The notes under the pieces were generated by a model. The model worked only from the letters and a program-made list of their open reading frames with translations. It was not told the origin of the DNA and did not search any database. Position numbers and translations under genes: made by a program. 64,000 nt of DNA from Macrostomum hystrix (lineage: Eukaryota; Animalia; Platyhelminthes): the NCBI GenBank assembly GCA_950097015.1, contig CATNEN010000041.1, positions 1,798,001 to 1,862,000 of the forward strand, read 5' to 3'. This document shows, piece after piece, positions 3,771 through 17,131 of the stretch (the first letter of the stretch is position 1; each line of letters starts with the position of its first letter).

Positions 3771-4020
3771 CTGTAGCTTCAAGTCTCACATTCAGGAATG
3801 AGGATCATGAGCACTGTAGCTTCAAGTCTCACATTCAGGAATGAGGATCATGAGCACTGTAGCTTCAAGTCTCACATTCAGGAATGAGGATCATGAGCAC
3901 TGTAGCTTCAAGTCTCACATTCAGGAATGAGGATCATGAGCACTGTAGCTTCAAGTCTCACATTCAGGAATGAGGATCATGAGCACTGTAGCTTCAAGTC
4001 TCACATTCAGGAATGAGGAT
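3771..4020. repeat. 43-bp minisatellite (CTGTAGCTTCAAGTCTCACATTCAGGAATGAGGATCATGAGCA), ~6 units
   Basis: Direct reading; truncated at the duplication junction. Confidence 0.9.
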
Positions 4021-4872: not shown

Positions 4873-7161
4873 GTAGCTGGTGACTGTCCACAATGACTGT
4901 AGCTGGTGACTGTCCACAATGACTGTAGCTGGTGACTGTCCACAATGACTGTAGCTGGTGACTGTCCCAAATGACTGTAGCTGGTGACTGTCCCAAATGA
5001 CTGTAGCTGATGACTGTCCCAAATGACTGTAGCTGGTGACTGCCCCAAATGACTGTAGCTGATGACTGTCCCAAATGACTGTAGCTGGTGACTGCCCCAA
5101 ATGACTGTAGCTGGTGACTGTCCACAATGACTGTAGCTGGTGACTGCCCCAAATGACTGTAGCTGGTGACTGTCCACAATGACTGTAGCTGGTGACTGCC
5201 CCAAATGACTGTAGCTGGTGACTGTCCACAATGACTGTAGCTGGTGACTGTCCACAATGACTGTAGCTGGTGACTGTCCACAATGACTGTAGCTGGTGAC
5301 TGCCCCAAATGACTGTAGCTGATGACTGTCCCAAATGACTGTAGCTGATGACTGTCCCAAATGACTGTAGCTGGTGACTGTCCCAAATGACTGTAGCTGG
5401 TGACTGTCCCAAATGACTGTAGCTGGTGACTGTCCCAAATGACTGTAGCTGATGACTGTCCCAAATGACTGTAGCTGGTGACTGCCCCAAATGACTGTAG
5501 CTGATGACTGTCCCAAATGACTGTAGCTGGTGACTGTCCCAAATGACTGTAGCTGATGACTGCCCCAAATGACTGTAGCTGGTGACTGTCCACAATGACT
5601 GTAGCTGGTGACTGCCCCAAATGACTGTAGCTGGTGACTGTCCACAATGACTGTAGCTGGTGACTGCCCCAAATGACTGTAGCTGGTGACTGTCCCAAAT
5701 GACTGTAGCTGGTGACTGTCCACAATGACTGTAGCTGGTGACTGTCCACAATGACTGTAGCTGGTGACTGTCCACAATGACTGTAGCTGGTGACTGTCCA
5801 CAATGACTGTAGCTGGTGACTGTCCACAATGACTGTAGCTGGTGACTGTCCACAATGACTGTAGCTGGTGACTGCCCCAAATGACTGTAGCTGATGACTG
5901 TCCCAAATGACTGTAGCTGATGACTGTCCCAAATGACTGTAGCTGGTGACTGTCCCAAATGACTGTAGCTGGTGACTGTCCCAAATGACTGTAGCTGGTG
6001 ACTGTCCCAAATGACTGTAGCTGATGACTGTCCCAAATGACTGTAGCTGGTGACTGCCCCAAATGACTGTAGCTGATGACTGTCCCAAATGACTGTAGCT
6101 GGTGACTGTCCCAAATGACTGTAGCTGGTGACTGTCCCAAATGACTGTAGCTGGTGACTGTCCACAATGACTGTAGCTGGTGACTGCCCCAAATGACTGT
6201 AGCTGGTGACTGTTCACAATGACTGTAGCTGGTGACTGTCCACAATGACTGTAGCTGGTGACTGTCCACAATGACTGTAGCTGGTGACTGTCCACAATGA
6301 ATGTAGCTGGTGACTGTCCCAAATGACTGTAGCTGGTGACTGTCCACAATGACTGTAGCTGGTGACTGTCCACAATGACTGTAGCTGGTGACTGTCCACA
6401 ATGACTGTAGCTGGTGACTGTCCACAATGACTGAAGCTGATGACTGTCCCAAATGACTGTAGCTGGTGACTGCCCCAAATGACTGCAGCTGGTGACTGCC
6501 CCAAATGACTGTAGCTGATGACTGTCCCAAATGACTGTAGCTGATGACTGTCCCAAATGACTGTAGCTGGTGACTGTCCCAAATGACTGTAGCTGGTGAC
6601 TGTCCCAAATGACTGTAGCTGGTGACTGTCCCAAATGACTGTAGCTGATGACTGTCCCAAATGACTGTAGCTGGTGACTGCCCCAAATGACTGTAGCTGA
6701 TGACTGTCCCAAATGACTGTAGCTGATGACTGTCCCAAATGACTGTAGCTGGTGACTGTCCCAAATGACTGTAGCTGGTGACTGTCCCAAATGACTGTAG
6801 CTGGTGACTGCCCCAAATGACTGTAGCTGGTGACTGCCCCAAATGACTGTAGCTGGTGACTGTCCCAAATGACTGTAGCTGATGACTGTCCCAAATGACT
6901 GTAGCTGGTGACTGTCCCAAATGACTGTAGCTGGTGACTGTCCCAAATGACTGTAGCTGGTGACTGTCCCAAATGACTGTAGCTGGTGACTGCCCCAAAT
7001 GACTGTAGCTGATGACTGTCCCAAATGACTGTAGCTGATGACTGTCCCAAATGACTGTAGCTGGTGACTGTCCCAAATGACTGTAGCTGGTGACTGTCCC
7101 AAATGACTGTAGCTGGTGACTGTCCCAAATGACTGTAGCTGGTGACTGCCCCAAATGACTG
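4873..7161. repeat. 26-bp minisatellite, long copy, ~88 units
   Basis: Direct reading; it generates the spurious 300-790 aa ORFs in the track. Confidence 0.95.
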
Positions 7162-7800: not shown

Positions 7801-8480
7801 CTGTAGCTTCAAGTCTCACATTCAGGAATGAGGATCATGAGCACTGTAGCTTCAAGTCTCACATTCAGGAATGAGGATCATGAGCACTGTAGCTTCAAGT
7901 CTCACATTCAGGAATGAGGATCATGAGCACTGTAGCTTCAAGTCTCACATTCAGGAATGAGGATCATGAGCACTGTAGCTTCAAGTCTCACATTCAGGAA
8001 TGAGGATCATGAGCACTGTAGCTTCAAGTCTCACATTCAGGAATGAGGATCATGAGCACTGTAGCTTCAAGTCTCACATTCAGGAATGAGGATCATGAGC
8101 ACTGTAGCTTCAGGTCTCACATTCAGGAATGAGGATCATGAGCACTGTAGCTTCAAGTCTCACATCCAGGAATGAGGATCATGAGCACTGTAGCTTCAGG
8201 TCTCACATTCAGGAATGAGGATCATGAGCACTGTAGCTTCAGGTCTCACATTCAGGAATGAGGATCATGAGCACTGTAGCTTCAGGTCTCACATTCAGGA
8301 ATGAGGATCATGAGCACTGTAGCTTCAAGTCTCACATCCAGGAATGAGGATCATGAGCACTGTAGCTTCAAGTCTCACATTCAGGAATGAGGATCATGAG
8401 CACTGTAGCTTCAGGTCTCACATTCAGGAATGAGGATCATGAACTCTGTGGCTTCAGGTCTCCAATTTAGGAACGAGGAT
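7801..8480. repeat. 43-bp minisatellite, second copy, ~16 units, degenerating at its 3' end
   Basis: Direct reading. Confidence 0.95.
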
Positions 8481-8751
8481 CCCGCCTCATTGCTCGAACC
8501 CCGGATCTAAAAATCCCTGGCACTAAGATGGTCACTTCTGGAATTAGTAAGAGTCGAGGGACACTGCCATAGATAAATAAACATCAAAATAGCCAATGAA
8601 GCCAATGAGCCGCCAACAGTCGAAACGCGAGATGCTAAGTTTCAGGGAAGGAGGCGGGCACTGCTGCGGCTTGTAGTCAGATTATAACACGGGTGATTAG
8701 CAATGTAAATAAATATATACTATTATTAATAAGTCATATACAATTTAAATG

Positions 8752-13600: not shown

Positions 13601-16600
13601 ATGTCTTCCAGTCAATCTAACCTTAAGAAGAGCTCTATGAAAAGGAAGCTAAAGTCTGGTGTCCAGCAAGGAATAGGACTATTCTTTGAATATGAGACGT
13701 ACAAGATTGTTCAAATTAATAGTAAAAAAGTTGGTTTAATTAATAGATTAATTCAGATAGTAATTCTGTCCTATATTATTGGGTGAGTTCATGTGCATAT
13801 GTATTACACTTAACATAAACGTAACAAGAAACGCGATAATTTCGTCCAATAATTATGATTGCAGCTTCTTACTGTCGTTTTAGCTGTATCAACATTTTTA
13901 AATATGTTGTAAACTTGAATTTTGAGTCTTCTGTCATTTATATTTGTGCAAGCTGTCTGTTTTTAGTTAGTATTGTTTTCACTGCTTTTAGTTTTTTGTT
14001 GATTGTAATTTTTGACTATAAAGGGCTACCTGAAACCCTATATTTCTTTTAAATAGGTGGGTAATAGTGTACAAGAAAGGATACCAAGAGTTTGACAATT
14101 TGGTCAGTGGAGTCACAACCAAAGTCAAAGGTGTCCAGTTCACTAACTTCACTGGCACTAGCATTGGAGATCGCATCTGGGATGTTGCAGACTTTGTGGT
14201 CCCACCTCAGGTAAGTTGCCAGTTTTTATTTGAGTTAATTGACTATTAAACTAGCTATTTATTATTTAGAATGCTTTCAGGCCTTTGAAGCCATTATCAG
14301 GCTTTTAATTTGATCTAAATTACCACTAAAGTATTCATTACATAAAACGGAAGATGTATCAATCACTGCCATGCTGCAGGAGAACAATGCCTTTTTTATC
14401 ATGACTAATGCTGTGGTGACGGCTGACCAGCACCAAGGCCGCTGTGACGAGGACCCAGCCGTGGCACCCTGTACAGCTGACTTGGATTGCCCAGCTGGCC
14501 AGCCACAGATGCTTGGCAGTGGAGTCAACACTGGCCGGTGCATCAACTCAACACAGAGTCCTGGCGCCCGCTCTTGCGAGGTGCTGGCCTGGTGCCCTGT
14601 GGAGGTGGACCGCCTGCCATCGGGCCCTGGCGCCAGCATGCTGGCAAATGCTGAGAACTTCACTGTGCTGATCAAGAATAGTATCGAGTTTCCTAAGTTC
14701 AAAGTCAAGAGGTAAGCATAAGCACTGACCAAGCGTCCATTAGAATGCTATTGACAACTTTGGATTCTTCAAGTATTGCAGTTCCTCTGATCCCAATCTC
14801 ATGAGGAGGATGGGACTTTGAAATGCACTTGTTGGTTCACTCTCGCCTTTAACCTGTTTTCATTTCCACAGCTTTTAACTTCCTTCTTACTTTCTAATTT
14901 GTTAGAAAACTTTATTGATAGTTTGTGTCCAATTTTAATTTACCGCTTAGAATATATCCTAACTCAATGCGGTCAATTGGGTTTTTGCCTAGTGGTTTTA
15001 GCGTCGCACTCACAACTTGAGAACGGGGGTTCGATTCCAGACTCTTTTAGAACAATTTGTGTTCTAAGAAACACTAGTTTACTGCATTGCTTCTACTCAC
15101 CCAACTGTTAAATTGGTACCAGCATTAGCGTGGGTAATTAAGTATGGGTATGACATCCCCCCAGTCCATTGACTGAACAGTCGTAAACAGTCTTCAGATG
15201 CGCCGCACATTAGCTGCGACTGTGCTGTCGGCTGCACATATGGCCTAATTGAGGCAGTTAAACGCAGATCCCCTGATCTCAGATCCCCTGATCTCAGATC
15301 CCCTGATCTCAGATCCCCTGATCTCAGATCCCCTGATCTCAGATCCCCTGATCTCAGATCCCCTGATCTCAGATCCCCTGATCTCAGATCCCCTGATCTC
15401 AGATCCCCTGATCTCAGATCCCCTGATCTCAGATCCCCTGATCTCAGATCCCCTGATCTCCGATCCCCTGATTTCAGATCCCCTGATCTCAGATCCCCTG
15501 ATCTCCGATCCCCTGATTTCAGATCCCCTGATCTCCGATCCCCTGATTGGTCCATAGGTAGAGCTCTAAGCCGTTTTTACCGACTGTTAGGCGCAACATC
15601 GCAGGCGGAGTGCCGGAAAAGTACCTGCTGTTCTGTCGCTGGCGGCCCGACCACCCGCTTCTGAGATACTGCCCGATATTCACCGTGCGGGACATGCTGC
15701 GGCAGGCCAACATTTCCAGCGGCATTCTGGTCAAAGTAGATGCCACAGCCTTACCTTTTTAGACCCCAGCCGACTTTACTCTGCGCCTGATTCCCCTGTG
15801 CGAGGTGTTGATAATTTGCGGTCCCCACTGATTTTGATCTCCTAATTGTGTTTAGTGCCTGATGCAATTATGCTTTGCTGCAGGTTTCGGGGCTTCTTTC
15901 ACACCCTGTATCAATTTTAATAGTGTTTTTTATTTTTATAGTGCTTGTAGTGACTTCTTAAAATACATTTAGTCATTGCAGTAAGAGCCAGTCTTTACGG
16001 CACTGAACGAATCGACAAGCGGCAGGCCGAAGCCCTTTAGGCCGAGAATCAAATACATTAACCAAGATATATGGAGGGGGCAGAAGGGTTTAGACGAGTA
16101 AGGACGGCCCAGATGGTAAGAGTTGAAAATGAAGGGTGAGGAAAGAGAGACGAACAGCTAGCCAATCAGAGATGAGGGAGAGGAAAGAGAAGTGAATGTT
16201 TGGAAAGTACAATAAGAGGGCGCGCGAACTTAAACAAACACAGAGAAGTGGGAACTAATAACAGTGCTTCCTGGAGTGCTGAGTGAAAAGTTCAGATTTC
16301 AGAATCAGAATTGCAGCTACACGCCAAACCCCTGCTATCCCCTTCGCAGGGCGGAGTCGTTGCTATAAACATACACTGGGACTGCAACCTGGACTGGTCC
16401 GAGTCCGGCTGCAACCCGGTCTACACTTTCACCCGGCTGGACGACCCCGCTGCCAGCATCGCCAAGGGCTGGAACTTTCGTTACGCCAATTATTATCGCA
16501 AGAATGACTCGGACTATCGAGTTCTGATCAAAGCCTACGGCATCCGCTTCATCATCTACGTGACAGGGCGGGCTGGCAAGTTCAACATCATCCCGCTGAC

Positions 16601-17131
16601 TATGAACCTGGGCTCGGGCCTGGCTCTGCTGGGGCTGGTGAGTGCTCCCAGTTATGCATATATATTGCATCCGTTACTGTCTACTTAAAGTAGCTTGTTC
16701 GCCTGCAGAGTGCTCCTTATTACATTTTACGTTCTTCTAGGCCACCATCCTGTGCGATATTATAGTACTTTACCTCCTCAACAAGCGCTCAGTCTATCGT
16801 GAGGCCAAGTTCCAGATGCTGGAGGATGACGATGCGTACAAGGTGAGGCTATACGTGCAATTTCATAATGATAAATCGCTTAATCAATTCTTGACTAGCA
16901 AACCCGTCTTTTTTGGGGGTTAGTCTTGCTAGTCCTTTATACTAATTTTGTATGTGAGCTTGTCGCGTCATCAGGCAAAATGAAAGCGATCTCTTTAAAC
17001 AACAAATAAGCGTGAAAACTCTCCAGGCGATGAATGACGATGAAACGGACGAATCGGAGCTCGCTGCGAAGCCAGGTAGCACGATCAACTTGGAGGCAAA
17101 GAAGCCCGAGTACGGATCTACGGGAGGTTGA
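13601..17131 (+). CDS. P2RX: P2X purinoceptor (ATP-gated cation channel), ~435 aa, 7 exons
   Basis: Exons 13601-13782, 14057-14210, 14380-14711, 15591-15735, 16350-16637, 16741-16842, 17027-17131, all in phase. YETYK (YxTxK), TTKVKG, 10 ectodomain Cys, NFR, IKAYGIRF, TM2 ...ATILCD, YREAK. The last exon is less certain. Confidence 0.93.
14971..15266 (+). mobile_element. tRNA-derived SINE in P2X intron 3
   Basis: A-box-like TAGTGGTTTTAG (~14990) and B-box GGTTCGATTCC (15028-15038), followed by a SINE-core-like CACCCAACTGTTAAATTGGTACC. No complete cloverleaf. Boundaries approximate. Confidence 0.6.
15267..15547. repeat. 15-bp minisatellite (GATCCCCTGATCTCA), ~19 units, P2X intron 3
   Basis: Direct reading. 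Confidence 0.95.
15957..16001 (-). pseudogene. Degenerate flatworm spliced-leader (SL) exon-like sequence in P2X intron 4
   Basis: The minus strand reads GCCGTAAAGACTGGCTCTTACTGCAATGACTAAATGTATTTTAAG. This is 36/45 ungapped identity to the Macrostomum SL as I recall it (GCCGTAAAGACGGTCTCTTACTGCGAAGACTCAATTTATTGCATG). The reference is from memory and must be verified. Confidence 0.6.

Follow-up and report, generated by a model that had tools for sequence, protein, structure and literature searches.

Why does an intron of a P2X-receptor gene in Macrostomum hystrix carry, on the strand opposite to the gene, 45 nucleotides that resemble the spliced leader (SL) of its genus, and is this stretch an SL RNA gene, a retroposed relic of one, or a passenger in something larger? 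The stretch (referred to as the SL block) was noticed by a first-pass annotation of 64,000 nucleotides of M. hystrix DNA; the whole of this DNA is hereafter the window, and all positions given without a contig name refer to it. The annotation interpreted the SL block as a retroposed relic, or as a new SL-derived small element, rather than as a working SL RNA. We compared the SL block with the SL RNA genes of the same genome (220,453,370 bases in 42 contigs), with its dispersed copies and with related full-length elements. The features discussed below are listed in Table 1.

Table 1 Features in and around the P2X intron that contains the SL block (window positions)
Feature	Position	Strand	Remarks
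P2X exon upstream of the insertion	15616..15729 (approximate bounds)	+	PF00864 198-227, weak match, E 0.023, within 15610-15762
A-rich tract	15925..15938	-	Host intron sequence, outside the element
Target-site duplication AGCAC, downstream copy	15941..15945	-	Direct reading
Solo LTR, 318 bp, BEL/Pao-type family (assigned by homology)	15946..16263	-	Starts TGTTATTA, ends GTCACTACA; dispersed copies; homologous full-length elements
LTR 3' terminus, 11 nt, AAGTCACTACA (U5 side, between SL block and LTR end)	15946..15956	-	Common to almost all copies
SL-derived block	15957..16001	-	Ungapped identity of 36/45 with the leader of the M. hystrix SL RNA genes
LTR 5' terminus TGTTATTAGTTC	16252..16263	-	Forms an imperfect inverted repeat with the 3' terminus; the window copy deviates at the ninth base (G instead of C)
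Target-site duplication AGCAC, upstream copy	16264..16268	-	Direct reading
P2X exon downstream of the insertion	16349..16643 (profile match within 16311-16688)	+	PF00864 235-337, E 3.7e-41

The reference leader was read from the M. hystrix SL RNA genes themselves. In these genes a 45-nt leader, GCCGTAAAGACGGTCTCTTACTGCGAAGACTCAATTTATTGCATG, is followed by GTAAGACACCG..., i.e. by a GTAAG donor (..TTGCATG / GTAAG, the slash marking the splice junction), and the published M. lignano SL (PMC8629364) corresponds to the last 35 nt of this leader. The published 35-nt sequence is present without mismatch at 26 places in the M. hystrix genome, and 156 sites on both strands lie within three mismatches of the last 32 nt of the leader. 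The SL RNA genes reside in an 11.6-kb tandem unit on contigs C15, C17 and C42, with one additional copy on C1, and for a genuine gene a fold of three hairpins is predicted (-34.7 kcal/mol), the second and third of which are separated by an Sm-like AUAUUUUUAG. The canonical SL RNA gene (L035, L036, L038 and L044; C15, C17 and C42) has a U1 snRNA gene (Rfam RF00003, 152 bits) approximately 340 nt away.

The minus-strand sequence from 16001 to 15957 reads exactly as the first-pass annotation gave it, and the ungapped match to the Macrostomum SL at 36 of the 45 positions was confirmed against the leader from the genome's own SL RNA genes. The runner-up site in the window matches the leader at 24 positions and the best of 200 block shuffles at 29, below the observed 36, while the binomial expectation for a 36/45 match is ≈0.003 genome-wide. 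The similarity extends from leader nucleotide 1 to the last nucleotide of the exon, i.e. to the splice junction, and none was detected beyond it. The window sequence at this point is ..TTTTAAG / AAGTCA: the terminal ATG is replaced by AAG and no GT donor follows directly, and neither an Sm-like site nor hairpins 2 and 3 are present after the block, in agreement with what had been remarked about ATG, GT and the Sm site. The window span equal in length to an SL RNA gene folds at -12.4 kcal/mol and lacks the three-hairpin layout, and scans of 15500-16600 for Rfam families and, using ARAGORN, for tRNA genes gave no match. Compared with the genuine Macrostomum SL RNA gene (PMC8629364; L035), the block shares the 36 exon positions but, unlike that gene, it is not part of a tandem U1-linked unit and has unrelated sequence upstream. 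The SL block is SL-derived, as the 36/45 match indicates, and it is not a functional SL RNA gene (no GTAAG donor, Sm-like site or three-hairpin fold), which is what the annotation had concluded on this point. The 5' hairpin that it described is a possible pairing, but the minimum-energy fold predicted for the block is a different one and has only -4.2 kcal/mol.

The nature of the SL block became apparent from its copies. A genome search using 161 nt around the 45-mer returned at least 40 scored matches among 62 candidates (77-92% identity), and these matches reach well upstream of the block. With longer flanks, homology was found to extend from position 16263 (in some copies from ≈16207) to 15946, and in alignments of 29-30 copies the ends are sharp and shared, with unrelated sequence immediately outside. 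The block begins 262 nt into this unit and ends 11 nt from its 3' end. Copies of the family usually begin with TGTTATTACTTC and end with GAAGTCACTACA; these termini are of the TG..CA type and form a 9/12 inverted repeat. Exact 5-bp duplications border the window copy (AGCAC) as well as L006, L007, L019, L011, L063 and L060, and duplications with four of five bases identical border L003 and L004; by chance, an exact 5-bp duplication is expected in roughly 1 in 1024 per copy. The genome-wide copies, shared ends and target-site duplications that the annotation had suggested looking for are all there (at least 40 copies, TG..CA ends and AGCAC). A 45-mer that resides within a 318-bp unit with TG..CA termini, a short terminal inverted repeat, a target duplication in the 4-6 bp range and homology to LTRs is thus best understood as part of an old solo LTR, and in the relatives L063 and L060 the corresponding sequences are direct repeats that flank a PBS, a PPT and, as scanned in L063, gag-pol.

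One further family member deserves mention. L058 (C3:9789000-9797000) has window-LTR-family sequence at ≈3962-4017 and 5813-5984, interrupted by approximately 1.8 kb; its leader is perfect (45/45) and is followed by CATAAGAAATC in place of AAGTCACTACA, and L058 may be a recombinant or converted copy.

Several copies retain sequence beyond the LTR. In L011, L008 and L029 the terminal CA adjoins a tRNA-type PBS, TGGCGCC(C/T)AAT. L008 and L029 represent one segmental duplication and not independent insertions, and L011, which consists of the LTR, 14 nt of PBS and GTCACTACA with TGAAG on either side, is a copy collapsed between its two LTRs. The junction between LTR end and PBS, AAGTCACTACATGGCGCCCAA, occurs 23 times in the genome (≤3 mismatches) compared to once for the reversed control. 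At two of these 23 places the relatives L063 and L060 were found, which are full-length and have LTR pairs of 284 bp that are 98.6-98.9% identical within a pair and 6.3-6.6 kb apart; these LTRs begin TGTTATTAC and end GTCAATACA, and the elements are bordered by the duplications ATACG and TGACC, respectively. The PBS TGGCGCCCAATGG (TGGCGCC(C/T)AA) follows the LTR end and a purine tract precedes the 3' LTR. The Pfam scan covered the open reading frames of L063 and predicted DUF1759 in the gag position and a pol with Peptidase_A17 (Pao, PF05380), RVT_1, Integrase_H2C2, rve and DUF5641, while L060 is known from its LTRs, PBS and duplications. L063 matches BEL/Pao elements in its gag (DUF1759-type) and pol (Peptidase_A17, RT and integrase) and is a member of this superfamily, and the TG..CA LTRs, 5-bp duplication and tRNA-type PBS of BEL/Pao elements recur in the window family and its relatives.

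The window LTR is colinear with the LTRs of L063 and L060 (67% identity over 260 aligned pairs) and the LTR starts are identical. On these two grounds the window element would belong to the BEL/Pao lineage; unlike full BEL/Pao elements, the window holds a solo LTR alone, without an internal part. In the genome search no full-length copy was found with an LTR closer to that of the window than those of L063 and L060, and the PBS-bearing copies L051 and L053 have neither a second LTR nor a pol open reading frame within 10 kb. L059 and L061 have the same LTR end and PBS, their LTRs are 332 bp, and the trace of the block in them is doubtful (a 9/11 local match only); they may either date from before the capture of the leader or contain a block that has decayed completely. 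To our knowledge, LTRs with a copy of the SL exon have not been described for the BEL/Pao superfamily.

Among the copies of the window LTR family the block matches the leader at 28-41 of the 45 positions (median 35), and in L011 it keeps ...TTGCATG. With this ending preserved and copies matching at up to 41/45, the founder of the family can be taken to have carried a nearly perfect leader, of which the window copy is an average, decayed descendant. In no copy of the family is the block followed by a GT donor or by the intron part of the SL RNA, and ahead of the block the family sequence bears no relationship to what precedes the real SL RNA gene. The mean pairwise identity among copies is 0.76 for the SL block, 0.75 for the region just upstream, 0.75 for the tail, 0.70 for the 5' end and 0.83 for the middle, i.e. 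extra conservation of the block among the copies was not found. As judged from these values, decay since insertion appears to have been no faster and no slower in the block than in the remainder of the LTR. In L063 and L060 the block is far more eroded and has a 5-nt deletion, despite the near-identical LTR pairs of both elements and the long open frames of L063; this lineage can therefore do without it.

Leader copies are also present in other retrotransposons. L052 (C8:3484000-3493999) is a Ty3/Gypsy element with protease (PR), RT, RNase H and integrase domains and a zinc-knuckle gag; its 694-bp LTRs (828-1520 and 7989-8681) are 99.1% identical and each has a 42/45 block in the middle of the LTR, sense to the element. 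In the BEL/Pao family, L052, L056 and L055 the resemblance to the SL RNA gene goes no further than the splice junction, the sequence ahead of the block is not related to that of the gene and the block is in sense orientation; the block starts with GCCGT in all of these except L055, where the first base differs (TCCGT). The SL scar, as we refer to such leader copies, thus appears to be present in at least two superfamilies, BEL/Pao and Ty3/Gypsy.

With respect to the individual loci, in L052 an ATTAAA is located approximately 40 nt past the SL block and the PBS is TGGCGCCCGAACGGGGAC, and sister copies are present at C8:3500837/3507997 and C1:10196334/10203548. L056 (C7:5513500-5523000), L033 and L048 belong to another repeat family, with (G/A)CT(T/A)CAACTCGCTTCGCTTCGTAAATC... 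after the leader (42-45/45); L056 has two 245-bp direct repeats 3.6 kb apart and may be either an LTR element of small size or a trans-spliced transcript that was retro-copied.

Our preferred reading, to which we assign a probability of roughly 0.85, is that positions 16263 to 15946 are an old BEL/Pao solo LTR that contains a copy of the leader obtained via a trans-spliced element RNA and that probably lacks a role. We infer the trans-spliced element RNA from the extent and placement of the copy, which begins at the cap site, ends at the splice junction, is always sense and lies on the PBS side of the LTR. In such a scenario the RNA of an ancestral element would have been trans-spliced near its 5' end, minus-strand strong-stop synthesis would have run to the new 5' end and copied the leader, and strand transfer would have placed the leader in each of the two LTRs of progeny elements. 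Once a leader that is not part of R had been copied, the first-strand transfer would need a non-homologous or micro-homology jump. Recombination would subsequently have removed the internal part of the element and left the antisense solo LTR in the P2X intron. If this holds, the scar would be a molecular fossil, according to which elements of at least two superfamilies completed retrotransposition although their RNAs had been trans-spliced, and the position of the block beside the PBS would record the 5' end of the ancestral RNA.

Retroviral-type reverse transcriptases switch templates, and a switch onto a co-packaged host trans-spliced mRNA, or onto a free leader-bearing RNA, would give the same end product as trans-splicing of the element RNA, i.e. 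a full copy of the exon that ends at the splice junction and is sense to the LTR. Two precise switches would be needed, however, to leave the 45 nt alone without any host mRNA sequence, and with at least two superfamilies (BEL/Pao and Gypsy) carrying exactly the exon, trans-splicing of the elements' own RNA is the simpler explanation; we regard template switching as unlikely. The inverted-repeat character of the 12-nt termini (imperfect, 9/12) and the shortness of the unit would also fit a non-autonomous DNA transposon (MITE) that happens to contain an SL sequence. The termini are TG..CA, though, several copies have a PBS after the 3' end, the relatives have direct LTR pairs that flank gag-pol and the 5-bp duplication is typical of integrase-mediated insertion, which together leave a DNA transposon with a close to negligible probability.

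The proposal of the first-pass annotation, in its general form either a new SL-derived SINE-like element or an A-tailed retroposed copy of SL RNA or of a short trans-spliced RNA, was right in that the sequence is SL-derived and in that an A-rich tract is present, 18 nt downstream of the block (reading from 15938 to 15925). This tract is not a retroposition tail, however, but host intron beyond the 5-bp target duplication, and it is unique to the window copy: no other copy of the window LTR family has an A-rich tail after CACTACA. Moreover, the unit reaches 262 nt upstream of the block, which is therefore not at its 5' end; there is no tRNA, 5S or 7SL head and no match to an RNA family, the intron part of the SL RNA does not follow the block, and the homologues of the unit are LTRs of gag-pol elements. 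A retroposed origin is highly improbable on this evidence, and the annotation's classification gives way to that of a 318-bp LTR with the block near its 3' end and with BEL/Pao homologues.

Does the block in the solo LTR have a function? It had been pointed out that the P2X intron would be complementary to the SL RNA and to trans-spliced 5' ends. On paper this is correct, as the P2X pre-mRNA would contain the complement of 36 of the 45 leader positions and the predicted intron:SL duplex is -47 kcal/mol compared to -83 kcal/mol for a perfect antisense and -13 kcal/mol for the shuffle mean; it is a matter of arithmetic, however, and nothing indicates that it has an effect. A functional block, which would act either by providing element transcripts with a leader-like 5' end (SL mimicry, to the benefit of translation or stability) or by antisense pairing with SL RNA, is favoured by this predicted duplex and by the 42/45 match that the Gypsy family keeps in LTR pairs that are 99% identical. 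Several observations argue in the opposite direction: conservation among copies is no better for the block than for neighbouring parts of the LTR, the blocks of L063 and L060 are much more decayed, 5-nt deletion included, and the window copy has lost nine of the 45 positions. SL RNA carries a trimethylguanosine cap, which, on general grounds, a leader transcribed as part of an LTR would lack. We consider a functional block quite improbable; the window block does not act as an SL RNA and is probably without any function. More broadly, that a hard-wired leader in Macrostomum LTRs is useful as a means to obtain the leader 5' end without trans-splicing, or that hundreds of antisense intronic copies act jointly as an SL RNA sink, is a long shot.

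The P2X gene (PF00864) is on the + strand, with exon matches at 13685-13798, 14055-14225, 14365-14715 (profile 82-188 at 14371-14715) and 16344-16643, and two exons flank the minus-strand LTR (Table 1), in line with the position antisense in a P2X intron that the annotation had proposed. The exon upstream of the insertion (CPIFTVRDML..) resembles CPVFRIGDIL.. of a paralogue on C38, and its donor, ...GGCATTCTG / GTCAAAG near 15729, was read against this paralogue. The downstream exon has the acceptor ..TTCGCAG / GGCGGAGTC (exon start GGCGGAG) near 16348. The intron covers ≈15730-16348, by eye against the paralogue, and the LTR is antisense to the gene, approximately 216 nt past the donor and 85 nt ahead of the acceptor. 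When an empty (pre-insertion) site was sought in the C38 paralogue, the exon alone aligned (72%) and the intron did not. As far as the P2X gene is concerned, the insertion seems to be neutral ballast in its intron. In the same gene region, 15249-15557 is a tandem repeat, (SDPLI)n / (SGDLR)n, with open frames on both strands.

Partial SL sequences inside LTR and LINE elements have been reported for parasitic flatworms, where 597 loci were discarded and where it was proposed that the retrotransposons had integrated after their transcripts were trans-spliced (PMC12582326, MBE 2025). The window scar is like those loci in that the leader is the sole SL RNA feature and is embedded in retrotransposon copies, and it is a new example of an already reported kind. 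That report treats the subject in one paragraph and for parasitic species only, whereas the present case concerns a free-living macrostomid. Beyond it, the anatomy is resolved here, i.e. the full 45-nt exon, 11 nt from the LTR end and beside the PBS, in a BEL/Pao family, and the main value of the locus lies in this anatomy, in parallel with the Gypsy family. SL relics in dinoflagellates, as summarised in PMC12582326 with reference to Slamovits and Keeling (2008), originate from recycled processed cDNAs; as far as that summary goes, they too are copies of a leader in the genome that reach as far as the splice junction and derive from reverse-transcribed trans-spliced RNA, which would also apply to the window block. 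According to the same summary they are located at the 5' ends of host genes and are often stacked, in contrast to the window block, which is a passenger of an LTR and spreads with a mobile element.

For SL annotation, our data suggest that most SL-like hits in genomes of Macrostomum are scars in retrotransposons, and a hit should be checked for a donor, an Sm site and hairpins before it is called an SL RNA gene or pseudogene. Finally, L057 (C39:12667000-12670000) is part of a tandem array with a 927-bp unit that spans at least C39:12,667,887-12,679,038. Each unit combines a 5S rRNA gene (Rfam, 118 bits) with a variant SL-RNA-like gene, in which ..CGGTCTCTTACTGCGAAGACTCTCTTTTTTGCATG is joined directly to GTAAGACACCG and which has an Sm-like GUAUUUUUGA and a predicted three-hairpin fold (-39 kcal/mol, z -2.8). 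A single SL is reported in the Macrostomum papers considered here, and the L057 array may represent a second, 5S-linked class of spliced leader.
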